Positions 1-64,000 of a stretch of DNA of 64,000 bases are shown one piece after another. The position numbers and the translations under genes are program-made. The DNA is taken from contig OZ251222.1 of the NCBI GenBank assembly GCA_965240325.2, positions 4,216,001-4,280,000 on the forward strand, read 5' to 3'. How positions within the stretch are numbered: the first letter of the stretch is position 1; every line of letters starts with the position of its first letter. The notes beneath the pieces are model-generated. The model was given only the letters and a program-made list of their open reading frames with translations. It was not told the origin of the DNA and searched no databases. Origin of the DNA: Rebecca billardiae RCC1528 (taxonomy: Eukaryota > Protista > Haptophyta).

Positions 1-3000
1 CGGCGGCGACGGTGGCGGCGACGGCGGCGGCGACGGTGGAGGCGCCGGCGGCGGGGAAGGCGGTGGAGACGGCGGCGGCGACGGTGGTGAGGGCGGCGGG
101 AACGGCTCCGTCCGAGGCGGCGGCGGTGGAAGTGGCGGCGGCGACGGCGGCGGCGACGGCGGCGGCGACGGTGGCGATGCCGGAGGCGGACTCGGAGGCG
201 GAGGGCTCGGAGGTGGCGATGGCGGAGGCACCGGTGGCAGCACCGGTGGCGGCGATGGCGGCGGGCTTGGTGGCGGGGATGGCTGCGCACCCGATGGCGG
301 CGGGCTCGGTGGCGGCGAGGGCGGCGGCGCAGGCGGCAGGCTCGGTGGTGGCGATGGCGGCGGTGATGGCGGTGGCTGTGGCAGTGGCGGCGGCGGGCTT
401 GGAGGTGGGCTCGGGGGCGGAGACGGCGGCGGTGATGGCGGAGGCGAGGGCGGTGGCGACGGCGGCGGGGACGGCGGCGGCGACGGCGGGGAGGGCGGCG
501 GGAACGGCTCCGTCCGAGGCGGCGGCGGCGGAAGCGGCGGCGGCGACGGCGGCGGAGACGGCGGCGGCGACGGTGGCGGTGCCGGAGGCGGACTCGGAGG
601 CGGAGGGCTCGGAGGTGGCGATGGCGGAGGCACCGGTGGCAGCACCGGTGGCGGCGATGGCGGCGGGCTTGGTGGCGGGGATGGCTGCGCACCCGATGGC
701 GGCGGGCTCGGTGGCGGCGAGGGCGGCGGCGCAGGCGGCAGGCTCGGTGGTGGCGATGGCGGCGGTGATGGCGGTGGCTGTGGCAGTGGCGGCGGCGGGC
801 TTGGAGGTGGGCTCGGGGGCGGAGACGGCGGCGGTGATGGCGGAGGCGAGGGCGGTGGCGACGGCGGCGGGGACGGCGGCGGCGACGGCGGGGAGGGCGG
901 CGGGAACGGCTCCGTCCGAGGCGGCGGCGGCGGAAGCGGCGGCGGAGACGGCGGCGGCGACGGCGGCGGCGACGGTGGCGGTGCCGGAGGCGGACTCGGA
1001 GGCGGAGGGCTCGGAGGTGGCGATGGCGGAGGCACCGGTGGCAGCACCGGTGGCGGCGATGGCGGCGGGCTTGGTGGCGGGGATGGCTGCACACCCGATG
1101 GCGGCGGGCTCGGTGGCGGCGAGGGCGGTGGCGCAGGCGGCAGGCTCGGTGGTGGCGATGGCGGTGGCTGTGGCAGCGGCGGCGGCGGGCTCGGTGGCGG
1201 GCTCGGTGGCGGTGAAGGCGGCGGCGATGGCGGCGGCGACGGTGGCGCCGACGGCGGCGGCGACGGTGGAGGCGCCGGCGGCGGGGAAGGCGGTGGAGAC
1301 GGCGGCGGCGACGGTGGTGAGGGCGGCGGGAACGGCTCGGTCCGAGGCGGCGGCGGTGGAAGTGGCGGCGGCGACGGCGGCGGCGACGGCGGCGGTGATG
1401 GTGGCGGTGCCGGAGGCGGACTCGGAGGCGGAGGGCTCGGAGGTGGCGATGGCGGAGGCACTGGTGGCAGCGCCGGTGGAGGCGATGGCGGCGGGCTTGG
1501 TGGCGGGGATGGCTGCGCACCCGATGGCGGCGGGCTCGGTGGCGGCGAGGGCGGCGGCGCAGGCGGCAGGCTCGGTGGTGGCGATGGCGGCGGTGATGGC
1601 GGTGGCTGTGGCAGTGGCGGCGGCGGGCTTGGAGGTGGGCTCGGGGGCGGAGACGGCGGCGGTGATGGCGGAGGCGAGGGCGGTGGCGACGGCGGCGGCG
1701 ACGGCGGCGGCGACGGCGGGGAGGGCGGCGGGAACGGCTCCGTCCGAGGCGGCGGCGGCGGAAGCGGCGGCGGCGACGGCGGCGGCGACGGCGGCGGCGA
1801 CGGTGGCGGTGCCGGAGGCGGACTCGGAGGCGGAGGGCTCGGAGGTGGCGATGGCGGAGGCACCGGTGGCAGCACCGGTGGCGGCGATGGCGGCGGGCTT
1901 GGTGGCGGGGATGGCTGCGCACCCGATGGCGGCGGGCTCGGTGGCGGCGAGGGCGGTGGCGCAGGCGGCAGGCTCGGTGGTGGCGATGGCGGTGGCTGTG
2001 GCAGCGGCGGCGGCGGGCTCGGTGGCGGGCTCGGTGGCGGTGAAGGCGGCGGCGATGGAGGCGGCGACGGTGGCGCCGACGGCGGCGGCGACGGTGGAGG
2101 CGCCGGCGGCGGGGAAGGCGGTGGAGACGGCGGCGGCGACGGTGGTGAGGGCGGCGGGAACGGCTCGGTCCGAGGCGGCGGCGGTGGAAGTGGCGGCGGC
2201 GACGGCGGCGGCGACGGCGGCGGTGATGGTGGCGGTGCCGGAGGCGGACTCGGAGGCGGAGGGCTCGGAGGTGGCGATGGCGGAGGCACTGGTGGCAGCA
2301 CCGGTGGCGGCGATGGCGGCGGGCTTGGTGGCGGGGATGGCTGCGCACCCGATGGCGGCGGGCTCGGTGGCGGCGAGGGCGGCGGCGCAGGCGGCAGGCT
2401 CGGTGGTGGCGATGGCGGCGGTGATGGCGGTGGCTGTGGCAGTGGCGGCGGCGGGCTTGGAGGTGGGCTCGGGGGCGGCGACGGCGGCGGTGATGGCGGA
2501 GGCGAGGGCGGTGGCGACGGCGGCGGCGACGGCGGCGGCGACGGCGGGGAGGGCGGCGGGAACGGCTCCGTCCGAGGCGGCGGCGGCGGAAGCGGCGGCG
2601 GAGACGGCGGCGGCGACGGCGGCGGCGACGGTGGCGGTGCCGGAGGCGGACTCGGAGGCGGAGGGCTCGGAGGTGGCGATGGCGGAGGCACCGGTGGCAG
2701 CACCGGTGGCGGCGATGGCGGCGGGCTTGGTGGCGGGGATGGCTGCGCACCCGATGGCGGCGGGCTCGGTGGCGGCGAGGGCGGCGGCGCAGGCGGCAGG
2801 CTCGGTGGTGGCGATGGTGGTGGTGATGGTGGTGGGCTCGGTGGCGGGCTCGGTGGCGGTGAAGGCGGCGGCGATGGCGGCGGTGATGGTGGCGGTGCCG
2901 GAGGCGGACTCGGAGGCGGAGGGCTCGGAGGTGGCGATGGCGGAGGCACTGGTGGCAGCACCGGTGGCGGCGATGGCGGCGGGCTTGGTGGCGGGGATGG

Positions 3001-6000
3001 CTGCGCACCCGATGGCGGCGGGCTCGGTGGCGGCGAGGGCGGCGGCGCAGGCGGCAGGCTCGGTGGTGGCGATGGCGGCGGTGATGGCGGTGGCTGTGGC
3101 AGTGGCGGCGGCGGGCTTGGAGGTGGGCTCGGGGGCGGCGACGGCGGCGGTGATGGCGGAGGCGAGGGCGGTGGCGACGGCGGCGGCGACGGCGGCGGCG
3201 ACGGCGGGGAGGGCGGCGGGAACGGCTCCGTCCGAGGCGGCGGCGGCGGAAGCGGCGGCGGAGACGGCGGCGGCGACGGCGGCGGCGACGGTGGCGGTGC
3301 CGGAGGCGGACTCGGAGGCGGAGGGCTCGGAGGTGGCGATGGCGGAGGCACCGGTGGCAGCACCGGTGGCGGCGATGGCGGCGGGCTTGGTGGCGGGGAT
3401 GGCTGCGCACCCGATGGCGGCGGGCTCGGTGGCGGCGAGGGCGGCGGCGCAGGCGGCAGGCTCGGTGGTGGCGATGGTGGTGGTGATGGTGGTGGGCTCG
3501 GTGGCGGGCTCGGTGGCGGTGAAGGCGGCGGCGATGGCGGCGGCGACGGTGGCGCCGACGGCGGCGGCGACGGTGGAGGCGCCGGTGGCGGGGAAGGCGG
3601 TGGGGACGGCGGCGGCGACGGTGGTGAGGGCGGCGGGAACGGCTCGGTCCGAGGCGGCGGCGGCGGAAGCGGCGGCGGAGACGGCGGCGGCGACGGCGGC
3701 GGCGACGGTGGCGGTGCCGGAGGCGGACTCGGAGGCGGAGGGCTCGGAGGTGGCGATGGCGGAGGCACCGGTGGCAGCACCGGTGGCGGCGATGGCGGCG
3801 GGCTTGGTGGCGGGGATGGCTGCGCACCCGATGGCGGCGGGCTCGGTGGCGGCGATGGCGGCGGCGCAGGCGGCAGGCTCGGTGGTGGCGATGGCGGCGG
3901 TGATGGCGGTGGCTGTGGCAGTGGCGGCGGCGGGCTTGGAGGTGGGCTCGGGGGCGGAGACGGCGGCGGTGATGGCGGAGGCGAGGGCGGTGGCGACGGC
4001 GGCGGCGACGGCGGCGGCGACGGTGGTGAGGGCGGCGGGAACGGCTCCGTCCGAGGCGGCGGCGGTGGAAGCGGCGGCGGCGATGGCGGCGGCGACGGCG
4101 GCGGCGACGGTGGCGGTGCCGGAGGCGGACTCGGAGGCGGAGGGCTCGGAGGTGGCGATGGCGGCGGCACCGGCGGCAGCGCCGGTGGCGGCGATGGCGG
4201 CGGGCTTGGTGGCGGGGATGGCTGCACACCCGATGGCGGCGGGCTCGGTGGCGGCGAGGGCGGTGGCGCAGGCGGCAGGCTCTGTGGTGGCGATGGCGGT
4301 GGCTGTGGCAGCGGCGGCGGCGGGCTCGGTGGCGGGCTCGGTGGCGGTGAAGGCGGCGGCGATGGCGGCGGCGACGGTGGCGCCGACGGCGGCGGCGACG
4401 GTGGAGGCGCCGGCGGCGGGGAAGGCGGCGGGGACGGCGGCGGGGACGGCGGGGAGGGCGGCGGGAACGGCTCCGTCCGAGGCGGCGGCGGTGGAAGCGG
4501 CGGCGGCGATGGCGGCGGCGACGGCGGCGGCGACGGTGGCGGTGCCGGAGGCGGACTCGGAGGAGGAGGGCTCGGCGGCGGCGATGGCGGCGGGCTTGGT
4601 GGCGTCGTCGGCGGCGGTGAAGGCGGCGGGCTTGGCGAAGCAGCCACTGGCGGCGGGCTCGGTGGCGGCGAGGGCGGTGGCGCAGGCGGCAGGCTCGGTG
4701 GTGGCGATGGCGGCGGTGATGGCGGTGGCTGTGGCAGTGGCGGCGGCGGGCTCGGTGGCGGGCTCGGTGGCGGTGAAGGCGGCGGCGATGGCGGCGGCGA
4801 CGGTGGCGCCGACGGCGGCGGAGACGGTGGAGGCGCCGGTGGCGGGGAAGGCGGCGGGGACGGCGGCGGCGACGGCGGTGAGGGCGGCGGGAACGGCTCC
4901 GTCCGAGGCGGCGGCGGTGGAAGCGGCGGCGGCGATGGCGGCGGCGACGGCGGCGGCGACGGTGGCGGTGCCGGAGGCGGACTCGGAGGCGGAGGGCTCG
5001 GAGGTGGCGATGGCGGCGGCACCGGCGGCAGCGCCGGTGGCGGCGATGGCGGCGGGCTTGGTGGCGGGGATGGCTGCACACCCGATGGCGGCGGGCTCGG
5101 TGGCGGCGAGGGCGGTGGCGCAGGCGGCAGGCTCTGTGGTGGCGATGGCGGTGGCTGTGGCAGCGGCGGCGGCGGGCTCGGTGGCGGGCTCGGTGGCGGT
5201 GAAGGCGGCGGCGATGGCGGCGGCGACGGTGGCGCCGACGGCGGCGGCGACGGTGGAGGCGCCGGTGGCGGGGAAGGCGGTGGAGACGGCGGCGGCGACG
5301 GTGGTGAGGGCGGCGGGAACGGCTCCGTCCGAGGCGGCGGCGGCGGAAGCGGCGGCGGCGATGGCGGCGGCGACGGCGGCGGCGACGGTGGCGGTGCCGG
5401 AGGCGGACTCGGAGGCGGAGGGCTCGGAGGTGGCGATGGCGGAGGCACCGGTGGAAGCACCGGTGGCGGCGATGGCGGCGGGCTTGGTGGCGGGGATGGC
5501 TGCGCACCCGATGGCGGCGGGCTTGGCGGCGGCGAGGGCGGCGGCGCAGGCGGCAGGCTCGGTGGTGGCGATGGCGGCGGTGATGGCGGTGGCTGTGGCA
5601 GCGGCGGCGGCGGGCTCGGTGGCGGGCTCGGTGGCGGTGAGGGCGGCGGCGATGGCGGCGGCAACGGTGGCGCCGACGGCGGCGGCGACGGTGGAGGCGC
5701 CGGTGGCGGGGAAGGCGGCGGGGAGGGCGGCGGGGACGGCGGGGAGGGCGGCGGGAACGGCTCCGTCCGAGGCGGCGGCGGTGGAAGCGGCGGCGGCGAT
5801 GGCGGCGGCGACGGCGGCGGCGACGGTGGCGGTGCCGGAGGCGGACTCGGAGGCGGAGGGCTCGGAGGTGGCGATGGCGGAGGCACCGGTGGCAGCACCG
5901 GTGGCGGCGATGGCGGCGGGCTTGGTGGCGGGGATGGCTGCGCACCCGATGGCGGCGGGCTTGGCGGCGGCGAGGGCGGCGGCGCAGGCGGCAGGCTCGG

Positions 6001-8900
6001 TGGTGGCGATGGCGGCGGTGATGGCGGTGGCTGTGGCAGCGGCGGCGGCGGGCTCGGTGGCGGGCTCGGTGGCGGTGAGGGCGGCGGCGATGGCGGCGGC
6101 AACGGTGGCGCCGACGGCGGCGGCGATGGTGGAGGCGCCGGTGGCGGGGAAGGCGGCGGGGACGGCGGCGGGGACGGCGGGGAGGGCGGCGGGAACGGCT
6201 CCGTCCGAGGCGGCGGCGGTGGAAGCGGCGGCGGCGATGGCGGCGGCGACGGCGGCGGCGACGGTGGCGGTGCCGGAGGCGGACTCGGAGGAGGAGGGCT
6301 CGGCGGCGGCGATGGCGGCGGGCTTGGTGGCGTCGTCGGCGGCGGTGAAGGCGGCGGGCTTGGCGAAGCAGCCACTGGCGGCGGGCTCGGTGGCGGCGAG
6401 GGCGGTGGCGCAGGCGGCAGGCTCGGTGGTGGCGATGGCGGCGGTGATGGCGGTGGCTGTGGCAGTGGCGGCGGCGGGCTCGGTGGCGGGCTCGGTGGCG
6501 GTGAAGGCGGCGGCGATGGCGGCGGCGACGGTGGCGCCGACGGCGGCGGAGACGGTGGAGGCGCCGGTGGCGGGGAAGGCGGCGGGGACGGCGGCGGCGA
6601 CGGCGGTGAGGGCGGCGGGAACGGCTCCGTCCGAGGCGGCGGCGGTGGAAGCGGCGGCGGCGATGGCGGCGGCGACGGCGGCGGCGACGGTGGCGGTGCC
6701 GGAGGCGGACTCGGAGGCGGAGGGCTCGGAGGTGGCGATGGCGGCGGCACCGGCGGCAGCGCCGGTGGCGGCGATGGCGGCGGGCTTGGTGGCGGGGATG
6801 GCTGCACACCCGATGGCGGCGGGCTCGGTGGCGGCGAGGGCGGTGGCGCAGGCGGCAGGCTCTGTGGTGGCGATGGCGGTGGCTGTGGCAGCGGCGGCGG
6901 CGGGCTCGGTGGCGGGCTCGGTGGCGGTGAAGGCGGCGGCGATGGCGGCGGCGACGGTGGCGCCGACGGCGGCGGAGACGGTGGAGGCGCCGGTGGCGGG
7001 GAAGGCGGCGGGGACGGCGGCGGCGACGGCGGTGAGGGCGGCGGGAACGGCTCCGTCCGAGGCGGCGGCGGTGGAAGCGGCGGCGGCGATGGCGGCGGCG
7101 ACGGCGGCGGCGACGGTGGCGGTGCCGGAGGCGGACTCGGAGGCGGAGGGCTCGGAGGTGGCGATGGCGGCGGCACCGGCGGCAGCGCCGGTGGCGGCGA
7201 TGGCGGCGGGCTTGGTGGCGGGGATGGCTGCACACCCGATGGCGGCGGGCTCGGTGGCGGCGAGGGCGGTGGCGCAGGCGGCAGGCTCTGTGGTGGCGAT
7301 GGCGGTGGCTGTGGCAGCGGCGGCGGCGGGCTCGGTGGCGGGCTCGGTGGCGGTGAAGGCGGCGGCGATGGCGGCGGCGACGGTGGCGCCGACGGCGGCG
7401 GAGACGGTGGAGGCGCCGGCGGCGGGGAAGGCGGCGGGGACGGAGGCGGGGACGGCGGGGAGGGCGGCGGGAACGGCTCCGTCCGAGGCGGCGGCGGTGG
7501 AAGCGGCGGCGGCGATGGCGGCGGCGACGGCGGCGGCGACGGTGGCGGTGCCGGAGGCGGACTCGGAGGAGGAGGGCTCGGCGGCGGCGATGGCGGCGGG
7601 CTTGGTGGCGTCGTCGGCGGCGGTGAAGGCGGCGGGCTTGGCGAAGCAGCCACTGGCGGCGGGCTCGGTGGCGGCGAGGGCGGTGGCGCAGGCGGCAGGC
7701 TCGGTGGTGGCGATGGCGGCGGTGATGGCGGTGGCTGTGGCAGTGGCGGCGGCGGGCTCGGTGGCGGGCTCGGTGGCGGTGAAGGCGGCGGCGATGGCGG
7801 CGGCGACGGTGGCGCCGACGGCGGCGGAGACGGTGGAGGCGCCGGTGGCGGGGAAGGCGGCGGGGACGGCGGCGGCGACGGCGGTGAGGGCGGCGGGAAC
7901 GGCTCCGTCCGAGGCGGCGGCGGCGGAAGCGGCGGCGGAGACGGCGGCGGCGACGGCGGCGGCGACGGTGGCGGTGCCGGAGGCGGACTCGGAGGCGGAG
8001 GGCTCGGAGGTGGCGATGGCGGAGGCACCGGTGGCAGCGCCGGTGGCGGCGATGGCGGCGGGCTTGGTGGCGGGGATGGCTGCGCACCCGATGGAGGCGG
8101 GCTCGGTGGCGGCGAGGGCGGCGGCGCAGGCGGCAGGCTCGGTGGTGGCGATGGCGGCGGTGATGGCGGTGGCTGTGGCAGTGGCGGCGGCGGGCTCGGT
8201 GGCGGGCTCGGTGGCGGTGAAGGCGGCGGCGATGGCGGCGGCGACGGTGGCGCCGACGGCGGCGGTGAAGGTGGTGGCGCCGGTGGCGGGGAAGGCGGCG
8301 GCGACGGCGGCGGCGACGGCGGTGAGGGCGGCGGGAACGGCTCCGTCCGAGGCGGCGGCGGCGGAAGCGGCGGCAGTGACGGCGGCGGAGACGGCGGCGG
8401 CGACGGTGGCGGTGCCGGAGGCGGACTCGGAGGCGGAGGGCTCGGCGGCGGCGATGGCGGCGGGCTTGGTGGCGTCGTCGGCGGCGGTGAAGGCGGCGGG
8501 CTTGGTGCAGCAGCCACTGGCGGCGGGCTTGGTGGCGGCGAGGGCGGCGGCGCAGGCGGCAGGCTCGGTGGCGGCGATGGCGACGGTGATGGCGGTGGCT
8601 GTGGCAGTGGCGGCGGCGGGCTTGGAGGTGGGCTCGGTGGCGGTGAAGGCGGCGGTGATGGCGGCGGTGACGGTGGCGCCGACGGCGGCGGAGACGGTGG
8701 AGGCGCCGGTGGCGGGGAAGGCGGCGGGGACGGCGGCGGCGACGGCGGTGAGGGCGGCGGGAACGGCTCCGTCCGAGGCGGCGGCGGCGGAAGCGGCGGC
8801 GGCGACGGCGGCGGCGACGGCGGCGGCGACGGTGGCGGTGAGGGCGGTAGAGCTGGGGGCGGAGGGCTTGGCGGTGGTGACGGTGGCGGCACCGGTGGCA
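1..8900. repeat. Coding tandem array, ~21 units mostly of 402/426/438 bp (RTEPF unit)
   Basis: Anchor gaacggctc[c/g]gtccgag at 100, 502, 904, 1330, 1732, 2158, 2560, 3220, 3637, 4039, 4465, 4891, 5317, 5755, 6193, 6619, 7045, 7471, 7897, 8335, 8761. Confidence 0.9.
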
Positions 8901-11900
8901 GTGCTGGTGGTGGCGATGGCGGTGGACGTGGGCTGTTAGGAGGCGGAGATGGCGGCGGGCTTGGCGGCGCTGAGGGCGGCGGCGATGGCGGCGGTGACGG
9001 CGGTGGTGACGGCGCCTCTTGCGCGAGTGGCGGTGGCGGGCTGGGCGGCGGAGCAGGCGGAGGGCTTGGCGGTGGCAGCGGCGGCAACACTGGCGGCGGG
9101 CTGGGCGGTGGCGCCGGTGGCGGACTCGGCGGCGGTGCCGGCGGCAGCGATGGAGGTGGGCTCGGCGGCGGGCTCGGTGGCGGCCCCGGCGGCGGTGGAC
9201 TTGGCGGCGGAGATGGCGGTGGCGACGGTGGCGGGCTCGGTGGCGGCGACGGTGGCGGCGATGGCGGCGGTGTCGGTGGCGGTGACGGCGGTGGCAACGG
9301 CGGTGAGGGCGGCGGGAATGGCTCAGCACGCGGTGGTGGTGGCGGCCTTGGCGGTGGCGAGGGTGGCGGGCTGGGCGGAGGCGAGGGCGGCGGAGACGGA
9401 GGCGGCGAGGGCGGGGGCGGCGAGGGCGGTGGGCTCGGTGGCGGTGCTGGCGGCAGCGAGGGCGGCGGGCTTGGCGGCGGTGATGGCGGTGGGCTCGGTG
9501 GTGGCGGGCTTGGCGGCGGTGACGGCGGCGGGCTCGGCGGCGGGCTCGGCTCCGACGGCGGCGGCGATGGCGGTGGGCTCGGAGGTGGCGCCGGCGGGAG
9601 GACGGGCGGTGGCGATGGCGGTGGCGAGGGCGGCGGGGTTGGGAGTGGCGGCGGCGGGCTGGGCGGTGGTGATGGTGGCGGCGATGGCGGAGAGACAGGT
9701 GGCGGGCTTGGAGGGGGCGTCGGCGGAGACGCTGGTGGCGGTGATGGTGGCGGCGCGGGTGGTGGCGAAGGTGGTGGCAGCGGCACCGGCGGTGGCGGGC
9801 TCGGCGGTGGCGATGGCGGTGGGCTTGGCGGCGGAGATGGCGGCGGAGACGGTGGCGGGCTCGGCGGCGGCGATGGAGGCGGGCTTGGTGGCGGGCTCGG
9901 GGGCGGTGACGGTGGCGGCGACGGCGGCGGAGGCGACGGCGGTGGGCTCGGCGGCGGAATCGGCGGTGGAGACGGTGGCGGTGCCGGAGGTGGCGACGGT
10001 GGCGGCGAGGGCGGCGGCGAGGGCGGCGGTGCTGGCGGCGACGGTGGCGGGAACGGCTGCACGCGTGGCGGCGGCGGTGGCAGTGGCGGTGGCGATGGTG
10101 GCGGGCTGGGCGGAGGCGAGGGCGGCGGAGACGGAGGCGGCGAGGGCGGGGGCGGCGAGGGCGGTGGGCTCGGTGGCGGTGCTGGCGGCAGCGAGGGCGG
10201 CGGGCTTGGCGGCGGTGATGGCGGTGGGCTCGGTGGTGGCGGGCTTGGCGGCGGTGACGGCGGCGGGCTCGGCGGCGGGCTCGGCTCCGACGGCGGCGGC
10301 GATGGCGGTGGGCTCGGAGGTGGCGCTGGCGGCGGCGAGGGCGGCAGTGATGGCGGCGGAGACGGCGGCGGCGCCGGCAGCGGCGGTGGCGGGCTCGGAG
10401 GCGGCGAGGGCGGCGGAGACGGTGGCGCCACGGGCGGTGGGCTCGGCGGTGGCGCCGGAGGCGGGCTCGGAGGCAGGCTCGGCGGCGGCGAGGGTGGTGG
10501 CAATGGCGGAGGCGACGGCGGCGGAGACGGCAGCGGCGGCGGCGGGCTCGGAGGCGGCGACGGCGGTGGGCTCGGCGGCGGCGATGGCGGCGGGCTCGGC
10601 GGTGGTGCCGGCGGCACGGATGGCGGCGGCGACGGTGGCGGCGCGGGTGGTGGCGACGGTGGCGGGACAGGAACCGGCGGTGGCGGGCTCGGCGGTGGCG
10701 ATGGCGGTGGGCTCGGTGGCGGAGACGGCGGCGGAGACGGTGGTGGGGTTGGCGGCGGCGATGGCGGGGCACCCGGTGGCGGGCTCGGTGGCGGGCTCGG
10801 TGGCGGTGTCGGCGGCGGCGGCGACGGCGGCGGGCTCGGCGGTGGAGATGGTGGCGGCGACGGTGGCGGTGATGGTGGTGGCGACGGTGGTGGCGATGGC
10901 GGCGGCGAAGGCGGCGGTGCTGGCGGCGACGGCGGCGGGAACGGCTGCACGCGCGGCGGCGGCGGCGGCAGTGGCGGTGGCGATGGCGGCGGGCTGGGCG
11001 GCGGTGACGGCGGCGGGCTGGGTGGCGGCGATGGCGGCGGTGGTGACGGTGGCGGGCTCGGCGGCGGCGCTGGCGGCGGCGCGGGCGGCGGGCTCGGCGG
11101 CGGTGACGGCGGCGGGCTCGGCGGTGGCGGGCTTGGCGGCGGTGACGGCGGCGGGCTCGGCGGCGGGCTCGGATCGGACGGTGGCGGCGATGGCGGCGGG
11201 CTCGGCGGAGGTGCTGGCGGCGGCGAGGGAGGCGGTGACGGCGGTGGCGACGGCGGCGGCGCCGGCAGAGGCGGCGGCGGGCTGGGCGGCGGCGAGGGCG
11301 GCGGAGACGGTGGCACCACGGGCGGTGGGCTCGGCGGTGGCGCAGGTGGAGGGCTTGGCGGCAGACCCGGCGGCGGCGAGGGTGGTGGCAATGGCGGAGG
11401 CGACGGCGGCGGCGACGGCAGCGGCGGCGGCGGGCTCGGAGGCGGCGACGGCGGTGGGCTCGGCGGCGGTGATGGCGGCGGGCTCGGCGGTGGTGCCGGC
11501 GGCACGGATGGCGGCGGTGACGGTGGCGGCGCGGGTGGTGGCGACGGTGGCGGGACAGGAACCGGCGGTGGCGGGCTCGGCGGTGGCGATGGCGGTGGGC
11601 TCGGTGGCGGAGACGGCGGCGGAGACGGTGGTGGGGTTGGCGGCGGCGATGGCGGGGCACTCGGTGGCGGGCTCGGTGGCGGGCTCGGTGGCGGTGTCGG
11701 CGGCGGCGGCGACGGCGGCGGGCTCGGCGGTGGAGATGGTGGCGGCGACGGTGGCGGTGATGGTGGTGGCGACGGTGGTGGCGATGGCGGCGGCGAGGGC
11801 GGCGGTGCTGGCGGGGACGGCGGCGGGAACGGCTGCACGCGCGGCGGCGGCGGCGGCAGTGGCGGTGGCGATGGAGGCGGGCTGGGCGGTGGCGATGGCG

Positions 11901-47202: not shown

Positions 47203-47203
47203 G

Positions 47204-53200: not shown

Positions 53201-56200
53201 GCTCGGCGGTGGCGACGGCGGCGGCACGGGCGGCGGGCTTGGCGGCGGCGCCGGAGGTGGGCTCGGCGGCGGCGAGGGCGGCGGAGCGGGTGGCGACGGC
53301 GGCGGGAACGGCTCAGCCCGTGGCGGCGGCGGCGGCAGGGGCGGTGGCGACGGAGGTGGGCTCGGCGGCGGCGAAGGCGGTGGCGAGGGCGGAGGTGTTG
53401 GCGGCGGCGGGCTCGGGGGCGGGCTCGGCGGTGGCGCCGGCGGCGCGCCCGGCGGCGGCGAGGGCGGCGGGCTCGGTGGCGGGCCTGGCGGCGGCGGGCT
53501 CGGCGGCGGGCTCGGCGGTGGGCTCGGCGGCGGGCTGGGCGGCGGGCTCGGCGGCGGGCTCGGCGGCGGGCTCGGCGGCGGACTGGGCGGCGACGAGGGC
53601 GGTGGCGAAGGTGGCGGGCTCGGCGCGTCCGCGGGTGGTGGGCTCGGCGGCGGGCTTGGCGGTGGGCTCGGCGGCGGGGATGGCGGCGGGCTGGGCGGCA
53701 CCGACGGTGGCGGCGAGGGCGGCGGCAACGGCGGCGGAGGGCTCGGCGGCGGACTCGGCGGAGGGCTCGGTGGCGGCGAGGGCGGGGGTGATGGCGGCGG
53801 GCTCGGAGCGCCGGCCGGTGGCGGTGACGGTGGCGGGCTCGGCGGAGGCGACGGTGGCGGCATGGGTGGCGGGCTTGGTGGTGGCGATGGAGGCGGCACG
53901 GGCGGCGGCGGCGAGGGTGGCGGGCTCGGCGGTGGTGATGGCGGCGGCACGGGGGGCGGGTTGGGCGGAGGCGACGGCGGAGGGCTCGGTGGCGGTGATG
54001 GCGGCGGCTCTGGCGGCGAAGGCGGCGGGAACGGCTCCGCCCGAGGCGGAGGCGGTGGCGCGGGCGGCGGCGAGGGCGGTGGGCTTGGCGGTGGCGAGGG
54101 TGGCGGCGAGGGCGGCGGGGACGGCGGCGGCGGCGACGGCGGCGGTGCGGGCGGTGGTGACGGCGGCGGCACAGGTGGCGGCTGTGGCGGCGGGCTCGGC
54201 GGCGGCTGCGGCGCGCTGGGTGGCGGCGACGGCGGCGGCGACGGCGGCGGCGACGGGGGCGGCAGAGGCGGCGGCGACGGGGGCGGCAGAGGCGGGCTCG
54301 GCGGTGGGCTCGGCGGCGGGCTCGGCGGCGGCGATGGCGGTGGCGCAGGCGGCGGCGCTGGCGGCGGCGAGGGCGGCGGTGCTGGCGGCGGCGAGGGCGG
54401 CTGACCCGGGGGTGGGCTCGGAGGTGGGTTGGGCGGTGGCGAGGGCGGCGGGCTCGGGACGCCCGCCGGCGGTGGGCTCGGCGGTGGGCTCGGCGGTGGC
54501 GACGGCGGTGGCGCTGGCGGCAGGGACGGCGGTGGGCTCGGCGGCGGCGACGGTGGCGGGCCCGGCGGCGGCGACGGCGGTGGCGACGGGGGCGGCGGGG
54601 ACGGTGGCGGGCTTGGTGGCGGCAATGGAGGCGGCACCGGCGGCGAACGCGGCGGCGGCGACGGTGGTGGCGACGGCGGCGGGCTCGGTGGCGGCGCCGG
54701 CGGCGCCGGCGGCGGGAAGGGCAATGCGCGCGGAGGCGGCGGCGGCAGGGGCGGCGACGACGGAGGCGGGCTCGGCGGCGGCGAGGGTGGCGGTGAGGGC
54801 GGTGGTGTGGGCGGCGGCGGGCTCGGCGGCGGGCTCGGCGGCGGCGCCGGCGGCGCGCTCGGCGGCGGCGAGGGCGGCGGGCTCGGTGGCGGGCTCGGCG
54901 GTGGCGGGCTCGGCGGCGGTGACGGCGGGGGGCTTGGCGGCGGGCGCGGCGCGGCGGGTGGCGGCGACGGAGGTGGGCTTGGCGGTGGCGAGGGTGGCGG
55001 GGATGGCGGCGGCGACGGCGGAGCGGACGGTGGCGGCGACGGCGGCGGCAATGGCGGGGGCGAAGGCGGGGGCGAAGGTGGCAGGCTTGGCGGCGGCGAG
55101 GGCGGCGGGCCGGGCGAGCCTGTGGGTGGAGGGCTGGGCGGGGGGCTGGGCGGCGGCACGGGTGGCGGAGACGGTGGCACCGCCGGCGGTGGGCTCGGTG
55201 GTGGCGTCGGCGGCGGCGTCGGCGGCTGCGCCGGCGGCGGGCTCGGCGGCGGGCTCGGCGGCGGCGCTGGCGGCGGAGGGCTCGGTGGCGGCGACGGTGG
55301 AGGCGCCGGGGGCGATGATGGCGGCGGCGACGGCGGTGGCCGCGGCGGCGGGCTCGGCGGCGGGCTCGGCGGCGGCGAGGGTGGCAGCGACGGCGGCGGC
55401 GACGGCGGAGGCACGGGCAGCGGCGGAGGCGGGCTCGGCGGTGGCGACGGCGGCGGCGCGGGCGGCGGGCTCGGCGGCGGCAAAGGCGGACGCGACGGTG
55501 GGGGCGGCGACGGAGGCGGCGCGGGCGGCGGTGAGGGCGGCGGCGACGGCGGCGGCGACGGCGGCGGCGATGGTGGCGGGCTCGGCGGCGGGCTCGGGGG
55601 CGGCGCGGGCGGCGACGGCGGCGGGAAGGGCAATGCGCGCGGAGGCGGCGGCGGCAGGGGCGGCGGCGACGGAGGCGGGCTCGGCGGCGGCGATGGCGGC
55701 GGCGACGGTGGCGGCGCCGGCGGCGGCGGCGAGGGCGGCGGCGAGGGCGGCGGCAATGGCGGCGGCGACGGCGGTGGCGAAGGCGGTGGGCTCGGCGGCG
55801 GCTGCGGCGATCGGGGCGGCGGGGACGGCGGAGGCGACGGCGGTGGTGAGGGCGGTGGAGACGGCGGCGGTGAGGGTGGCGGCAGCGGTGGGCTCGGCGG
55901 CGGCGAGGGCGGCGGCGAGGGCGGCGGGCTCGGTGGCGGTTGCGGTGGCGTCGACGGCGGCGGCGACGGCGGCGGATGCGGTGGTGGCGACGGCGGAAGG
56001 CTTGGCGGTGGCGACGGCGGCGGCGACGGCGGTGGTGAGGGCGGTGGGCTCGGAGGCGGCTGCGGCGATCGGGGCGGCGGGGACGGCGGAGGCGACGGCG
56101 GTGGTGAGGGCGGTGGAGACGGCGGCGGTGATGGTGGCGGCAGCGGTGGGCTTGGCGGTGGCGATGGTGGCGGCGCCGGCGGCGGGCTCGGCGGCGGGCT

Positions 56201-59200
56201 CGGCGGCGGGCTCGGCGGCACGCTTGGCGGTGGGCTCGGAGGTGGCGCTGGCGGCTGCAGCGGCGGCGGGCTCGGGGGCGGCAGAGGTGGCGGCAGAGGC
56301 GGTGGTGGGCTCGGCGGCGGCGAAGGCGGTGGTGAGGGCGGCGGCGACGGCGGTGGGCTCGGCGGTGCCGCCGGCGGCGGCGAAGGTGGCGGCGAGGGCG
56401 GCGGCGAGGGTGGCGGTGAGGGTGGCGGCGAGGGCGGTGGCAGGGGCGGCGGAGGCGAGGGTGGTGGCGAAGGCGGCGGGCTCGGCGGCGGCGCTGGCGG
56501 CGGCGATGGCGGCGGCACCGGCGGCAGCGCGGGCGGCGGGCTCGGCGGCGGCGAGGGCGGTGGGCTCGGCGGCGGGCTCGGCGGCGGGCTCGGCGGCGAC
56601 GGTGGCGGGAATGGCTGGGTGCGAGGCGGGGGCGGCGGGAGCGGCGGCGGCGAGGGCGGCGGGGACGGCGGCGGCGAGGGCGGTGGGCTCGGTGGGGGCG
56701 ACGGTGGTGGGCTCGGCGGCGGCGAGGGCGGCGGGGACGGCGGCGGTGACGGTGGCGGGCTCGGCGGCGGCGAGGGCGGCGGCAAGGGCGGCGGCGAGGG
56801 CGGCGGTGGCGAGGGCGGCGGGCTCGGCGGCGGCGAGGGCGGCGGCGAAGGCGGCGGCTGCGGCGGCGACGCCGGCGGCGAGGGCGGTGGGGGCGAGGGC
56901 GTGGGTGGTGGCGGCAGCGGCGGCGCCGAGGGCGGCTTGGGCGGGCCGGGCGGCGGGAACGGGCTGGCGGGCGGCGGGCTGGGCGGCGGCGATGGTGGCG
57001 GCGAGGGCGGCGGTTCGGGGTGCGGCGGCGGGCTGGGCGGCGGGCTCGGCGGCGGGCTGGGCGGCCGCGGCTGCGGCGGCGGTGGGCTCGGTGGCGGCAA
57101 GGGCGGCGGGCTCGGCGGCGGGCTCGGCGGCGGGCTCGGGGGCGGCGACGGCGGCGGCGACGGCGGTGGGCTCGGCGGTGGGCCAGGCGGCGGCGACGGC
57201 GGCGGCGACGGCGGTGGGCTCGGCGGCGGGCTCGGCGGCGGGCTCGGCGGCGGCGACGGCGGTGGGCTCGGCGGTGGCGGCAGCGGCGGCGGGCTCGGCG
57301 GCGGCGACGGCGGCGGTGCCGGCGGTGGGACAGGCGGCGGCGGCGACGGCTGGGGTGGCGGCGGCGGCGGGAACGGGATCGTGCGCGGTGGTGGCGGCGG
57401 GTTCGGCGGCGGGCTCGGCGGCGGCGACGGCGGCGGCATCGGCGGCGGCGATGGCGGCGACGAAGGCGGCGGCGATGGCGGCGGCGAGGGCGGCGGCGAG
57501 GGCGGCGGCGTGGGCGGTGGCGAAGGCGGCGGCGTGGGCGGCGACGGCGGCGGGCTTGGCGGCGGCAGCGGTGGTGGCGGCGACGGCTGGGGTGGCGGCG
57601 GCGGCGGGAACGGGATCGTGCGCGGTGGTGGCGGCGGTGCTGGCGGCGGCGACGGTGGCGGCGACGGCGGTGGCGTCGGCGGCGACGGCGGCGGCGACGG
57701 CGGCGGGCTCGGCGGCGGCGACGGCGGCGGCAGCGGTGGCGACGGCGGCGGGCTCGGCGGCGGCAGCGGCGGGGGTGGCGAGGGTGCCGGTGGCGGCGGC
57801 GGCGGGAATGGGATCGTGCGCGGCGGCGGAGGCGGTGCGGGCGGCGGCGACGGTGGCGGCGCCGGCGGCGGCGAGGGCGGCGGCGGCGAGGGCGGCGGTG
57901 CGGGCGGCGACGGGCTCGGCGGCAGGCCCGGCGGCGGCGACGGCGGTGGCGACGGCGGAGGCATCGGCGGCGGCGAGGGCGGTGGCGAGGGGGGCGGCGA
58001 GGGGGGCGGCGAGGGCGGTGGTGAGGGCGGCGGCGAGGGCGGCGGGCTCGGCGGCGGCGACGGCGGCGGCGACGGCGGCGACGGCGGCGGGAACGGCTCC
58101 GCGCGCGGCGGCGGCGGCGGCAGCGGCGGCGGCGAGGGCGGCGGGCTCGGTGGCGGCGAGGGCGGCGGCGACGGCGGAGGCGTGGGCGGTGGCGGCGAGG
58201 GCGGCGGCGCGGGCGGCGGCGGCGAGGGCGGCGCAGACGGCGGCGGCGAGGGCGGCGGGCTCGGCGGCGGGCTCGGCGGCGGGCTCGGGTTGCCGACTGG
58301 CGGCGGGCTCGGCGGCGGGCTCGGCGGCGGCGACGGCGGCGGCGACGGCGGCGGCGCCGGCGGCGCGCTCGGCGGCGGGCGCGGCGGCGGGCGCGGCGGC
58401 GGGCGCGGCGGCGGGCTCGGCGGCGGAGACGGAGGTGGCGGGGACGGCGGCGGAGAAGGCGGCGGGGACGGCGGCGGGGACGGCGGCGGGGACGGCGGCG
58501 GGCTCGGCGGCGGGCTCGGCGGCGGCGAGGGCGGCGGGCCCGGAGCGCCGGCCGGCGGCGGGCTCGGCGGCGGCGAGGGCGGCGGCAAGGGCGGCGGGCT
58601 CGGCGGCGGGCGCGGCGGCGCGCGCGGCGGCGGGCTCGGCGGCGGCGCCGGCGGCGGCGGGCTGGGCGGCGGGCTCGGCGGCGGCGACGGCGGCGGGCTC
58701 GGCGGCGGCGTCGGCGGCGGTGCCGGCGGCGGCGACGGCGGCGGCGCCGGCGGTGGGCTCGGCGGCGGGCTGGGCGGCGGCGCCGGTGGCGGGCTCGGCG
58801 GCGCGCCGGGCGGCGGGCTCGGCGGCGGGCTCGGCGGCGGCGCGGGCGGCGCGGCCGGCGGCGGCGAGGGCGGCGGGCTGGGCGGCGGGCTGGGCGGCGG
58901 GCTGGGCGGCGGGCTGGGCGGCGGCGCGGGCGGCGGCGGCAGCGGCGGCCCCGCCACCGTCGCGCTGAGCAGCGGCTCGAACGTGAAGGCGAAGCCGTCA
59001 TAGAAGGCGGCGGACGAGCCGAGGAACGGGAAGTTGCGCTCGTCGCCGCCGACGCCGAGCGCGTCCGTCGTCTCGACCATCACGGCGACGCCGAACGCGC
59101 CGCTCAGCGCGGGCCAGCCGCCGCTCGGGTACACGCCGAGCGTGAAGACGCCGTCCGCGTAGCTCGCGCGCCCCACCCAGTAGCCCTGCGTCGAGGTGCC

Positions 59201-62200
59201 GTTGTCGGTGCCGTTCACGTACACGGGCGTGTACGACGCGGCGTCCATCTCGACCTCGAACAGCACCGCCGTCTGCGAGTCGTCGGCGGTGGCGCCGTCG
59301 TCGCTCGTCACGACGACCGAGACGACGAGCGGCTCGGTGCTGCCCAGCACCGGCGCGCTCGTGATGTTGTAGCTCGCGAGGAAGCGGTACTTCCCCGCGA
59401 CGGCGCGCAGCAGGTACTGCACGTCCTGCGCGCTCGGCGTGCCGTCGAGCGTCGGGTCGAGCGCGGACGCGCACGCGCTCACGTCCGAGCCGACGACGAG
59501 CTGCGCGAGGACGCGCACGTCGAACGAGGTGAAGGCGCAGTCGCCGTTCACGTCGCCCACCACCGCCGCGTCGCACCCCGCGCACGAGGACAGCCGGCGC
59601 CGCGCGCCGCGCCGCTCCGCCGCGCGGCGCGCGCTCGCGCGGTGGGCGCGCGGCGCGCGCGCGGCCTCGAGCTCGAGCAGCGCGCGCCGCCGCCGGCTGA
59701 CGGTGGTGGTGAGCCCGCCCACGCCCGCGAAGATGGGCACGTCGGTGACGCGCGTCTCGGTCTCGCCCAGCAGCGTGACGAGCTCGACGACCGTGCCGCT
59801 CAGCTCCGTGCTCGCCGCGCCGAGCACGTCGAAGAGGACCGTGCCCACGTTTGCCAGCTGGCCGCTCGTCGTGAGCGAGTCGGTGTTGCCCGCGATCCGC
59901 ACGGTCTCGAGCGGGTCGTTGATCGTGCACACGGCCCAGGAGAGCGTGGTGCACGAGGCCGCGCGGAGGACGGACGAGTCGAGCGCGATCTCGATCTGGA
60001 AGTTCACCAGGTACTCCGAGACGCCGCCCGTGTTGACGAGGACGTCGACGCTCACGCCGCTGCCCGACTGCACGAGCTGCAGCCCGCTGCTCGAGCCGAG
60101 GTCGACGTCGTACTGCGCGGGGCGCAGGTTGGCGGTGACGTCGAGCGTGTCCGAGACGGCGCCCGCGTCGCGCGAGGTGGCGGTGATCACGTTCGCGCCG
60201 TTGCGGCTGTTCCCCGCGATCGTGAGCACGCCGTCAGCGCCCACGCGCACCACGGCCGGGTCGTCCGAGCCCCAGTCCAGCAGCTGCGCCGAAGGCACGT
60301 ACGACAGCGAGAGCAGGTCGGCGTAGGCCACGCCGTCCGCGAGCGTGGCCGCGGCGGCCAGCGAGACGGAGGTGCCGTTGATCCCGTTGAGCAACGCGCC
60401 GGACGTCGAGCCGTACAGGCTGAGCGTGAGCGACGTGAGCTGCACCGGCATGTCGCTCACGAGCGCGAGCGCGGACGCAGAGGTCGAGCCCCACGTGGCG
60501 GTGATGAGCGCCGCGCCCGCCCCGACGCCGACGACGGTCGCCCCGCTGAGCGTCGCGACGGACGTGTCGTTCGAGGCGATGCTCATGTACGGGCCGAGGC
60601 CCGAGACGGCGGTGCCGTCGGTCAGCGCGGCGCTGGTCGTGGTGCCCGAGCGCTGGAACGCTGAGGACGCGCCGATCCGTCCGAGCTCCGCGTCCGCGAG
60701 CGTGATCGCCATGGCCGTGGCGTACAGCACGCGCACCTCCGCCCAGCCGCTCAAGCCGAAGGAGGGCACGGCGGCGCTCACGTTGAACGCGGCGCAGCTC
60801 GCGCCGGACGCGACGCTGATCGTCGCGCTCGGCGCGTCGAGCGTGGCGCAGTCGGTCGACGTGCCGCCGAGCGTGAGGTTGGTGCGCGCGTCTGCGCTGA
60901 AGTCCGCCTCCGAGCCGTCCGCAAAGTGGACCGTGACGGTGGCGGTGGTCGAGGTGGGAAGCGAGACGGGCGCGCCCGCGGCGGAGTCGCCCGGCGCGGC
61001 GAGGCGCGCGGTGGCGGTGCTCACGACGAGCGAGGTCGCGGCGGGCAGCGCGATCTCCACGCGCGCGCGCCCGGTCGCCAGCGTGCTGTTGCATGAGTCC
61101 CTCCACACCGCCTCGAGCAGCTCGCCCGCGGCCGAGCTCGCGCCCGTGGCGACGGTGGCGCTCCACGGCGCGTCGGCCGAGGCGGGCGCGCTCACGGTGA
61201 GGCTCGGCGTCCGGCTGCTGAGCGTGAGCGCGTCGGACGGGACGCGCTCCACCGAGCCATCGCCGAGGTACGCGTACGCGTACACGCTCAGCGCCTGCCC
61301 CTCGGCGCTCAGCGCCTGCGAGAGCTGCACGGCCGCGTCGAACGCGGCGCTGGACGCGCCGAGCTCCGTCGGCGGCTGCGCGACAAACGACGCGGCGCTG
61401 AACGCGACCGGCCGCAGCGAGGCGACGAGGCGCTGCACCGCGGTGGAGACGACGACGCTTGCGCGCACGCTGCCGCGCGCGCTTGACACGACCACCTCCG
61501 TCGAGCCCACGCCCACGCCGCTCACCGTCGCCACGCCGGTCGTGGCCGACTGGCTGACGCTCGCGACCGCCGCGTCCGCGCTCGCGAGCGCGGTGCGCGC
61601 GGTCACGTCCACGCCGCTCACCGTGCCCAGCCCCTCGCCGCCGAACGCGGCGACGACGCTCGCCGTGCCCGACTGAAAGGCCTGCGCGCCGCACGCGCCC
61701 GGCTGCGACGCGCCCTTGATTGCGTACAGCGTGCCTCGCTCCAGCACGAGCTCGGCGGACAGCGGGTACCACACGCGCAGCGGCACGCTCGCCACGACGG
61801 CGCCGCTCGACTCGTCGGTCACGTTCACGAGCGTCCCCGCCGCGCCGGCCGTGTGCGACGCGCCCGCGACGAGCGTGCACGGCGAGCCCGTCTCGACCGC
61901 GAGCACCGCCGCGTCGAGCGCCGCGCAGCCGTACCCTTGGGTCGCGTACGCCGACGCGGTGGCCGCCCTCGAGTAGAGCTCGAGCACGGAGAGCGCGGCG
62001 CTCGCGTTGGCGCCGCCGAGCGGGGCGTCGTTGAGCAGCTCGCCCGCGTCCACCCACGCTTGCACCGCGCCGACGGAGACCGCCTCGACGCCGAGCGTGC
62101 CCGTCGCGGCCGCGCCGTCGTCCGCGCCCGCCACCACGCCCGCGCTGTCTGAGAGGTACGCGTTGCTCGCAGCGTTCACGTACTGCACGACGCGGCACGA

Positions 62201-63298
62201 GAGCGCGGCCGCGTGCGAGCCGGGCGGCGCGTCCGCGCGCACGGCGAGCGTGAGCGTGATGAGCGGCACCGCGGCGCCCGTCACGTCCGCCTCGGACGTG
62301 CCGCCCGTCAGCCCGGACGCCACGACGCCGAGCGTGCCCACGCCGTCGTCGTTGAGCGTGGGCGAGTTGTACGTGCTCGCCACCGCGCTCGCGCTCACGC
62401 CCAGCAGGCTCGCGTTGTACGACAGCTCGACCTGCCACGTGCTGAGCGCCGCGCCGCCCGTGTGCGCGTACAGCACGAGCTCGAACGAGTCGCCCGCGAA
62501 GATGGGCGACTTGGCCATCTGCGCGAGCAGCCCGACGGAGGGCAGCGTGTACGCCGTCGGCGCCTTGGCAAGCGTGATCGCGCCCGCGGCCTCGCACGAG
62601 CCCGCGTTGCCGCCGCCGTCGTACGAGAAGTCGACGCGCGCGCTGAGCGTGCGCGCGGCGCTGTCGCTGAACCACGCGGCGTCGAGCGTCGCGCTGCACT
62701 CGCCCACGCCGCTGCTCGAGCCGGGCATCCCGCACGAGGACTGCGCGCTCTCCGAGCCGCCGTCGAGCGAGAGTGTGAGCAACACGCCCAGCCCGCTGCT
62801 CGTCACCTGCGAGCGCTGCGCCTCGTCGCGCATCTGGTAGTTGACGCGCGCGTCGAGGCGGTCGACGTACAGCACGGCGGTGCGCGGCACGCAGCTCACG
62901 CTCGCCGCCTGCTGCGCGACCAGCGTGAAGCCGGCGCTCGCCACGCCCAGGTCGATGCCGTGCGACGACGCGCGGACCGTGCCCGCGTCGCCCTTGGTCG
63001 CGCCCGCAAAGAAGCCCACGCTCACGTTGTGGAAGCTGCCCGCGCTGCTCGCCGAGCCGTGCAGCGGCAGGCCTGGGCTGCCCGCCGCCGGGTAGAGCGT
63101 CAGCAGCGCGCCCTCGACCAGGTCGGCCGCGTCGAAGGCGAACGGCGGCAGCGGCGGCGAGGGCGGCGAGGGCGGCGGGTGCGGCAGCGTGCGCGGCGGC
63201 GGCGGGCTCGGCGGCGACGGCGGCGGGGCCGGCGGCGGCGGGCTCGGCGGCGGCGACGGTGGCGGCGACGGCGGCGGCGACGGCGGCGGCTGCGGGAA

Positions 63299-63329
<31 letters not shown>

Positions 63330-64000
63330 GGCGGCGGGCTCGGCGGCGGGCTCGGCGGCGGGCGCGGCGGCGGGCTGGGCGGTGGAAGCGGCGGCGGCGG
63401 TGCCGGCGGTGGGGATGGCGGCGGCGAGGGCGGCGGGCTGGGCGGCGGCGAGGGCGGCGGCGAGGGTGGCGGGAACGGAGGCGGCGGCGAGGGCGGCGGC
63501 GAGGGCGGCGGCGAGGGCGGCAGCGTGGGAGGCGGGCTCGGCGGCGGGTGTGGTGGTGGCGGCGCCGGCGGTGGCGACGGTGGCGGCGATGGAGGCGGGC
63601 TGGGCGGCGGCGAGGGCGGCGGCGAGGGCGGCGGCGCGGGTGGCGGCGGCGAGGGCGGCGGCGAGGGCGGCGGCGAGGGCGGCGGCGAGGGCGGCGGCGA
63701 CGGCGGCGGCGGCGAGGGCGGCGGCGAGGGCGGTGGCGAGGGCGGCGGCGCAGGCGGCGGCGCAGGCGGCGGTGACGGCGGCGGCGACGGCGGCGGGCTC
63801 GGCGGAGGCGACGGCGGAGGGCTCGGCGGTGGCGGGCTTGGCGGCGGCGAGGGTGGTGGCGAGGGCGGCGGCGAGGGCGGCGGGCTCGGTGGGGGCGGGC
63901 TCGGCGGCGGAGCCGGTGGTGGCGAGGGCGGCGCCGCCGGCGGTGGCGACGGTGGCGGGCGTGGCGGCGGCGACGGCGGCGGGCTCGGAGGCGGCGACGG
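47204..64000 (-). CDS. Giant SPPP-rich (extensin/HRGP-like) extracellular protein with TMEM132-like/cohesin/dockerin module A; upstream segment, 5'-partial
   Basis: Corresponds to ORF 46373..63025(-). The frame continues upstream of the called GTG (…SPPLPPFAFDAADLVEGALLTLYPAAGSPGLPLHGSASSAGSFHNVSVGFF…) and through SPPP repeats to the right edge. Contains a normal-looking globular domain with strong GC3 codon bias. The Pro-rich reading ends at a 1-nt indel at 47201-47203. Confidence 0.9.
48860..53800. repeat. Near-identical coding tandem array, ~6 x 843 bp (281 aa)
   Basis: Anchor gaacggctcagcccgt at 49091, 49934, 50777, 51620, 52463, 53306; the translated units (…AGIP…ADAP…GAPP…RAEPF…) differ at only a few residues. 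Confidence 0.92.
59393..59557 (-). other. Dockerin-like domain, module A
   Basis: GDVNGDCAFTSFDVRVLAQLVVG…LDPTLDGTPSAQDVQYLLRAVAG: two Dx[N/T]xDx6D loops, each followed by an amphipathic helix, as in dockerin type I. Confidence 0.7.
59725..60113 (-). other. Cohesin-like domain 2, module A
   Basis: GSGVSVDVLVNTGGVSEYLVNFQIEIALDSSVLRAASC…TVRIAG…VGTVLFDV. Confidence 0.55.
61052..62900 (-). other. TMEM132-like ectodomain core, module A
   Basis: Motifs recalled from TMEM132 proteins occur in order: SC…GECSATLDAAWFS, a cohesin-like domain, LRVWYPL…TLYAIKG…C…FQS…VDVT, L…EGQ…YAYLGDGSV…LTLSS, and GELLEA…C…TLATG. Confidence 0.6.
62130..62540 (-). other. Cohesin-like domain 1, module A
   Basis: PIFAGDSFELVLYAHTGGAALSTWQVELSYNASLLGV…LGVVASG…PLITLTLAV matches the cohesin pattern (GdtftV.v…i.g.q..l.YD..lL…l.tltF.v). 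Confidence 0.6.

Follow-up and report, generated by a model that had tools for sequence, protein, structure and literature searches.

A 64,000-nucleotide stretch of the haptophyte Rebecca billardiae RCC1528 (NCBI GenBank assembly GCA_965240325.2, contig OZ251222.1, positions 4,216,001 to 4,280,000; called the window below and numbered from 1) was found to be read from end to end on the minus strand by one giant frame, interrupted by a single extra C. The frame encodes Ser-Pro3 rods, which are coding and under purifying selection, and two cassettes (M1 and M2) that join a TMEM132-type cohesin ectodomain to a second cohesin, a polybasic loop and a dockerin; Diacronema lutheri has this design without a break. 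The explanation that we favour, with modest confidence, is one intron-free gene for a giant secreted, membrane-tethered hydroxyproline-rich glycoprotein (HRGP), the extra C being a consensus error. The parts of the window are as follows.

47204 to 64000, minus strand: 5' piece of the giant frame, 5,599 codons by translation, open past the window end
1 to 47202, minus strand: 3' piece of the giant frame, 15,734 codons by translation, open past the window start
47203 to 47206, minus strand: the sole frame break, an additional C within a short run of C
63143 to 64000, minus strand: rod 0, the last 286 residues of an upstream Ser-Pro3 rod
58952 to 63142, minus strand: cassette M1, 1,397 amino acids (aa), with TMEM132-type ectodomain, second cohesin, polybasic loop, dockerin and C-terminal beta-rich domain
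62114 to 62536, minus strand: M1 first cohesin-like domain at the TMEM132 position, with approximate bounds and family-level support only (of 58 family members, 11 match Pfam Cohesin and 1 matches TMEM132_3rd)
61763 to 62059, minus strand: M1 TMEM132 fourth domain, of the BIG-type immunoglobulin class (PF16070, E 7e-6; 29.1 bits, above the curated cut-off)
59696 to 60115, minus strand: M1 second cohesin (predicted local distance difference test score, pLDDT, >90; cohesins top in Foldseek; Z 12-13 and root-mean-square deviation, rmsd, 2.5-3.5 over 125-133 residues)
59573 to 59695, minus strand: M1 polybasic loop, two Arg clusters between cohesin and dockerin, a candidate convertase site (lowest pLDDT of the model)
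59387 to 59566, minus strand: M1 dockerin, two calcium-loop/helix repeats, the second loop degenerate (Z 9.9, rmsd 1.5 over 60 residues to 2ccl_B)
25801 to 58951, minus strand: rod 1, 11,050 residues of Ser-Pro3 type, contour 3.4 µm, holding the break and periodic Arg-x-x-Pro-Phe (RxxPF) motifs
21568 to 25800, minus strand: cassette M2, 1,411 aa, laid out as M1 and 52% identical to it
About 22746 to 22327, 22320 to 22198 and 22188 to 22030, minus strand: M2 second cohesin, loop and dockerin, respectively
1 to 21567, minus strand: rod 2, made up of super-repeats of 888 and 402/426 nt, with 7,189 residues or more and a contour of 2.2 µm or more

Translation of the window showed no stop in one minus frame (A) from 64000 to 46376 and none in another (B) from 47934 to 1, and the proline-rich reading changed from A to B just once, near 47200. 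Translated separately, 64000-47204 and 47202-1 gave zero stops in either piece, and together they amount to 21,333 codons, or 2.05 MDa before glycans; the protein pieces 5' and 3' of the break were searched and folded separately. This re-translation confirmed a first-pass annotation made from the letters of the window, which had described one minus-strand reading of 5,599 + 15,734 codons, bar a 1-nt indel, with no stop or intron-like segment and mostly unseen by the open reading frame (ORF) caller. The caller listed 46373-63025 and many shadow frames, and never the 15,734-codon frame. No intron-like stretch was found in the window: runs of non-proline residues in the rods are at most five long, and M1 and M2 align without large insertions. 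AATAAA, ATTAAA, A5 and T5 are all absent from the sense strand of the window, and tRNA and Rfam searches gave no match in it.

The content of guanine plus cytosine (GC) of the window is 82%, and the G skew is strong outside two islands. At 82% GC the shadow frames also run open for 2,000-4,000 codons, so openness is weak evidence when taken alone. A shuffle that kept the composition of each codon position predicts about 53 stops for the rods and 27 for the modules, versus 0 observed. In the coding frame there are 109 CAG versus 8,703 CCG codons and no TAG versus 1,318 TCG, and TCN and AGY codons alike encode serine at the same repeat position of the rods. For rod segments that were duplicated recently and lie downstream of the break, the ratio of nonsynonymous to synonymous change (pN/pS) was 0.10 (6,831 codons, ungapped codon method); the value upstream of the break was 0.44, resting on just 26 changes. 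Because stops are missing against expectation, serine codons are mixed and pN/pS is 0.10, the rods are selected as protein, and we hold with high confidence that the giant frame is a real protein-coding gene. Long Gly- or Ala-rich ORFs on the plus strand were rejected as genes, being shadows of the Pro codons; stop-free stretches of about 4,000 codons on that strand (for example 2-11977, 34655-47401 and 47149-58965) are Gly- or Arg-rich and are such shadows too. Use of A or T at third positions climbs from 5' to 3' in the rods, the share of CCA among Pro codons being 11% for rod 0, 15% for the opening part of rod 1 and 22-24% beyond it, and is almost nil in the cassettes.

The rods consist of about 72% Pro and 17% Ser, nearly all of it as Ser-Pro3 (about 2,570 units), and as Ser-Pro(3-4) repeats under protein-level selection they match, in this feature, the chimeric rods of HRGPs. 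Pro runs within the Ser-Pro repeats reach at most five prolines. Over roughly 18,500 rod residues there are 2 Tyr, 5 Lys and 0 Cys, which excludes cross-linking of the extensin type, and a classical cross-linking extensin, with its Tyr-X-Tyr or Val-Tyr-Lys motifs, was rejected. The RxxPF motif is present in 82 copies versus 0.5 expected, mostly every 130-360 residues, at a spacing equal to the super-repeat units (281, 296 and 142/134 residues). The rods of D. lutheri carry 70 copies, mostly about 97 residues apart, of which 65 read RFLPF. The motif may be a kink, a docking site or a protease site. At 0.31 nm per residue, the contour length is 3.43 µm for rod 1 and at least 2.23 µm for rod 2. 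The first-pass figures of 3.4 and 2.2 µm are contour lengths only, and the stalks need not be extended: as a free worm-like chain, rod 1 would span 0.19-0.82 µm for persistence lengths of 5-100 nm, an assumed range. The glycosylated 429-residue rod of Chlamydomonas MST3 is straight over 146 nm, and periodic rods serve as rulers (PMC11015965).

Four super-repeat families make up the rods (843, about 4,116, 888 and 402/426 nt), with synonymous-biased divergence. The first-pass annotation had raised the possibility that the arrays were over-expanded by the assembly. Repeated 30-mers do cover 46% of positions, and one 843-nt array is 97-99% identical; the longest exact repeat in the window, however, is 842 nt, which together with the diverged, synonymous-biased structure of four distinct families makes over-expansion unlikely, and an independent PacBio assembly, that of D. 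lutheri, also has rods of about 3,000 residues. That the length of the frame is an artefact of this kind is in our judgement very improbable.

The 12-nt motif in which the break falls occurs 152 times in the window without the extra C and once with it. Exact repeat pairs on the same side of the break have an offset divisible by three in 1,074 of 1,074 cases, and pairs that cross it are off by 1 (modulo 3) in all 148, so there is exactly one break. Continuity of the gene across the break appears likely, and a consensus (assembly) error in the C run is the probable source of the extra base. A small intron was rejected, since the sole GT-YAG candidate (GT-AG) begins inside a conserved RAEPF motif and the others would use GC donors within ordinary codons of the rods. 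Two separate genes were likewise rejected, the 3' piece being without a start of its own, a poly(A) signal or an AT-rich gap.

Were the extra C real, the locus would be a very recent frameshift allele or a new pseudogene, in which 275 off-frame residues lead to a stop at 46373-46375, leaving a shorter, unanchored, one-cassette protein and an untranslated 3' 47 kb. The extra base is present in the assembly, the first Met of the 3' frame (38118) lies inside a rod and is without a signal peptide, so that no plausible start is available there, and giant repeat-rich genes are large mutational targets. Against this, the 15,734 codons show no further lesion and copies only 4-10% diverged have a pN/pS of 0.10, so a loss by frameshift could only be very recent. 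An added base in a run of C is the typical error of long-read sequencing, and the D. lutheri counterpart is unbroken. We consider a real frameshift improbable.

The two cassettes are 52% identical in amino acid sequence and each carries 12-13 N-glycan sequons plus conserved Cys. On these modules Pfam returned a weak dockerin besides the fourth TMEM132 domain, and no cadherin repeat was matched in them, whereas such repeats are present in homologues. The arrangement of a cohesin followed by three BIG domains, as in TMEM132-type ectodomains, was recovered in the cassette, the first cohesin at family level only. The cassette is not a TMEM132 proper, which has a single ectodomain, one transmembrane helix and PP1/WIRS motifs; it lies inside the chain, occurs more than once and has a cohesin and a dockerin added. 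The last 400 residues were predicted to fold (pLDDT 91; predicted template modelling score, pTM, 0.91) as cohesin, loop, dockerin and a further beta-rich domain, and the pTM of this piece suggests that the modelled domains keep a fixed arrangement. The second cohesin is modelled as the nine-stranded beta-sandwich of its class, cohesins filling ranks 1-10 of the structural matches at Z 12-13. The dockerin shows the duplicated calcium loop-helix of type I (Z 9.9), and the family profile, when compared with the PDB, matches cellulosomal dockerins and cohesins, reaching E 7.5e-9 to 4fl4_A. Near their 3' ends M1 (59243-59111) and M2 (21859-21727) share 133 identical bases, versus about 64% DNA identity elsewhere; the tract has the form of a recent gene-conversion-like event.

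A profile search with the cassette gave 608 clusters at E <=1e-30. Across the family, residues 1 to 820 of the cassette match domains 4, 5 and 6 of TMEM132 and the cohesin, in the order given in PMC6030884; PF16070 exceeds its cut-off for M1 and for 54 of the 58 members, and the fifth-domain, sixth-domain and cohesin models are found in 10-11 members. For the second cohesin, Pfam Cohesin matched in 70 of 110 members. Among 59 members with a scorable loop between cohesin and dockerin, 56 have a dibasic site, 50 two clusters and 42 a furin consensus.

The tree of cassettes (25 rows, all kept; midpoint root, no donor claimed) placed M1 and M2 as sisters, in one group with those of D. lutheri within a haptophyte clade. 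This points to a pavlovophyte as the probable source, and the two were probably duplicated within its lineage. A bacterial origin of the DNA was rejected, the nearest cassettes being those of Pavlovales. The closest relative is D. lutheri KFE25_003122 (45% cassette identity). On JAGTXO010000038.1 it lies within a single frame of at least 11,486 codons (locus 2-34459, open at the 5' end), ordered as rod, cassette, rod, cassette, rod and then a region with hydrophobic helices, and 2,992 of its 2,992 repeat offsets are in frame. Together with the coding tests, this unbroken counterpart supports the first-pass proposal of a hidden, intron-free coding sequence laid out as beads on rods. In Prymnesium parvum (AB1Y20_021478, CM083862.1; 33% identity) a 6,729-codon frame at locus 8882-29068 is annotated as 4,778 aa; it holds three cassettes 95-99% identical to one another, Pro-rich linkers that the annotation dropped, and a C-terminal Cys-rich repeat region. 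Cymbomonas CYMTET_54114 (LGRX02035242.1; 32% identity) has tandem cassettes with a Pro-rich spacer, and its two 'partial' genes (locus 1180-20885) probably form a single gene with tandem cassettes, whose Pro-rich linker shifts frame several times, in a way that looks like assembly indels.

In other homologues the cassettes are spaced by cadherin or TNFR repeats, or a single cassette is followed by filamin repeats, and one homologue comes from the choanoflagellate Salpingoeca urceolata. Three proteins of about 6,000 aa from ENA contigs (P0016, P0021 and P0069) are coherin-like, each with cadherin repeats between its three full cassettes; they are apparently intron-free on long metagenome contigs and also carry the cohesin-Arg loop-dockerin part. 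The longest among the 150 relatives listed is 7,984 aa, and many fall just below 8,000 aa, which suggests a length limit in the protein library that would hide giants. The metagenome scan gave no confirmed locus. Papers on coccolith proteomics mention Ser-Pro3-4 proteins and not cohesin, dockerin or TMEM132, and literature searches, which missed most subscription journals, did not find the rod-cassette combination or such a size described.

The public models raise the question of whether splicing takes out or shortens the rods, as exitrons or length isoforms, so that the real products are much shorter than the frame. Both the D. lutheri and the P. parvum models take rods as in-frame introns; KFE25_003122 is 4,660 aa long, begins inside a cassette and omits 2,949 and 544 in-frame codons, and the annotation of that genome, a polished PacBio assembly, used RNA-seq (PMC8379373). 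The annotated 'introns', however, also remove conserved cassette sequence; the second cassette of D. lutheri loses more than 100 codons in this way. The rods are under selection at the amino acid level, the window has no splice-like or AT-rich islands, and the sole GT-AG candidate across the break falls, as described above, inside a conserved motif. Splicing of this kind is quite unlikely.

For the giant HRGP as we picture it, secretion and membrane anchoring of the thread are suggested in part by the hydrophobic helices of D. lutheri. By analogy with plant and algal HRGPs and with MST3, the rod prolines would be hydroxylated and glycosylated and the rods would thereby become stiff polyproline-II threads, acting as spacers or rulers, with RxxPF perhaps marking regular kinks or docking sites. 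The conserved Arg clusters suggest that a Golgi convertase would cleave each polybasic loop. After the cut, the calcium-loaded dockerin, if it binds as the modelled folds would allow, would stay on the neighbouring cohesin, and the thread would be a chain of pieces joined by non-covalent clasps. The middle piece would then be dockerin - 11,000-residue rod - cohesin, and since it would bear both partners, it could swap them and link threads into a coat or tether. We offer this cut-and-clasp mechanism tentatively, judging it somewhat less probable than not from the conserved loop and the models. For the beads-on-a-string molecule of the first-pass annotation, which had put no name to the beads, the layout is supported, with TMEM132/coherin-type cohesin-dockerin cassettes as the beads; a single covalent chain is uncertain, as the loop conserved in each bead is probably cut.

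The cassette might instead be a plain adhesion head on one chain, with the loop uncut or with cohesin and dockerin binding other proteins. Animal TMEM132 keeps the cohesin without a dockerin (PMC6030884), and the degenerate second calcium loop fits the same idea. It is harder to reconcile with the cohesin, polybasic loop and dockerin staying adjacent across haptophyte, prasinophyte, choanoflagellate and cadherin-linked members, or with the dockerin aspartates being among the few invariant columns of the family alignment, and we rate the adhesion head as rather unlikely.

Several observations weigh against the giant clasped HRGP as a whole: the dockerins of the window score below the Pfam curated cut-off, their second calcium loop is degenerate, and start, signal peptide, stop and anchor all lie outside the window. 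In its fullest form, the proposal would be a precursor expressed whole, among the largest proteins and possibly the largest extracellular one, cut at each bead and re-clasped by calcium-dependent cohesin-dockerin binding into micrometre dockerin-rod-cohesin linkers that polymerise as a releasable coat or tether. We regard this version as speculative and rather unlikely; if true, it would be a eukaryotic structural use of the cellulosome clasp, and would identify the partner that the TMEM132 cohesin fold of animals has lost.

The individual parts are known (HRGP rods, TMEM132-type cassette, cohesin and dockerin), as is the rod-on-anchor design, from MST3. The locus points to very large extracellular proteins as a class that is lost from public annotation, rods having been called introns in two published haptophyte genomes. 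It also extends the TMEM132/coherin cassette, described as holozoan, to haptophytes and prasinophytes, with a dockerin beside the cohesin, and the question of what TMEM132-type cohesins bind becomes testable on a 400-residue construct. The product is a candidate for the fine surface threads of haptophytes, with a predicted bead spacing of up to 3.4 µm and, if RxxPF is a docking site, predicted sub-features every 40-110 nm.

Like plant extensins and the volvocine wall HRGPs (GP1, agglutinins and pherophorins), the protein joins Ser-Pro(3-4) rods to globular domains, and the rods here are ten to fifty times longer. Unlike plant extensins, it has no Tyr-X-Tyr or Val-Tyr-Lys cross-linking motif. 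Chlamydomonas MST3, the mastigoneme core, is an 8,572-aa protein with 42 P13/P11(XXP)3 repeats and a PKD2-like channel domain (PMC11015965). With it the present frame shares a mis-annotated gene model and periodic non-proline motifs, with Ser, Ala and Glu spacers, and, as predicted here, the character of a giant HRGP whose polyproline-II rod serves as ruler or scaffold on a membrane anchor. It is not an MST3-type core, its Pro runs ending at five and its anchor lying outside the window; the rods are of Ser-Pro3 type, one stalk alone has 11,050 aa and cohesin-dockerin cassettes interrupt the rods. The likeness that we propose is one of working mode.

The first-pass label of titin scale is fair as an order of magnitude and not as a record, PKZILLA-1 reaching 45,212 aa (10.1101/2024.01.29.577497). 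Titin and PKZILLA-1 resemble the frame in size class and in being invisible to standard annotation, but they are intracellular, multi-exon and unrelated in sequence and function, whereas the present protein, predicted from DNA, would be extracellular and is intron-free over 64 kb. Cellulosomal type I cohesin-dockerin pairs share both folds and the calcium-loop pattern; here, in contrast, both partners are in one eukaryotic chain with a polybasic loop between them, and the window has no enzymes or carbohydrate-binding modules.

TMEM132 and the coherins, lefftyrins and hedglings of choanoflagellates and sponges, as described in PMC6030884, likewise have a cohesin followed by tandem BIG domains. 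The second cohesin, polybasic loop and dockerin are additions relative to TMEM132, and the spacers are polyproline rods instead of the cadherin repeats of the coherin group. Vertebrates have no detectable dockerin (PMC6030884). Direct homologues include the cadherin-spaced proteins in which the full cassette occurs three times. Nearest in design are the relatives from D. lutheri, P. parvum and Cymbomonas, with the same cassette in tandem and Pro-rich spacers, although their rods are shorter (about 200-3,000 versus 11,050 residues) and the proteins stand in public annotation as 'hypothetical' and truncated.

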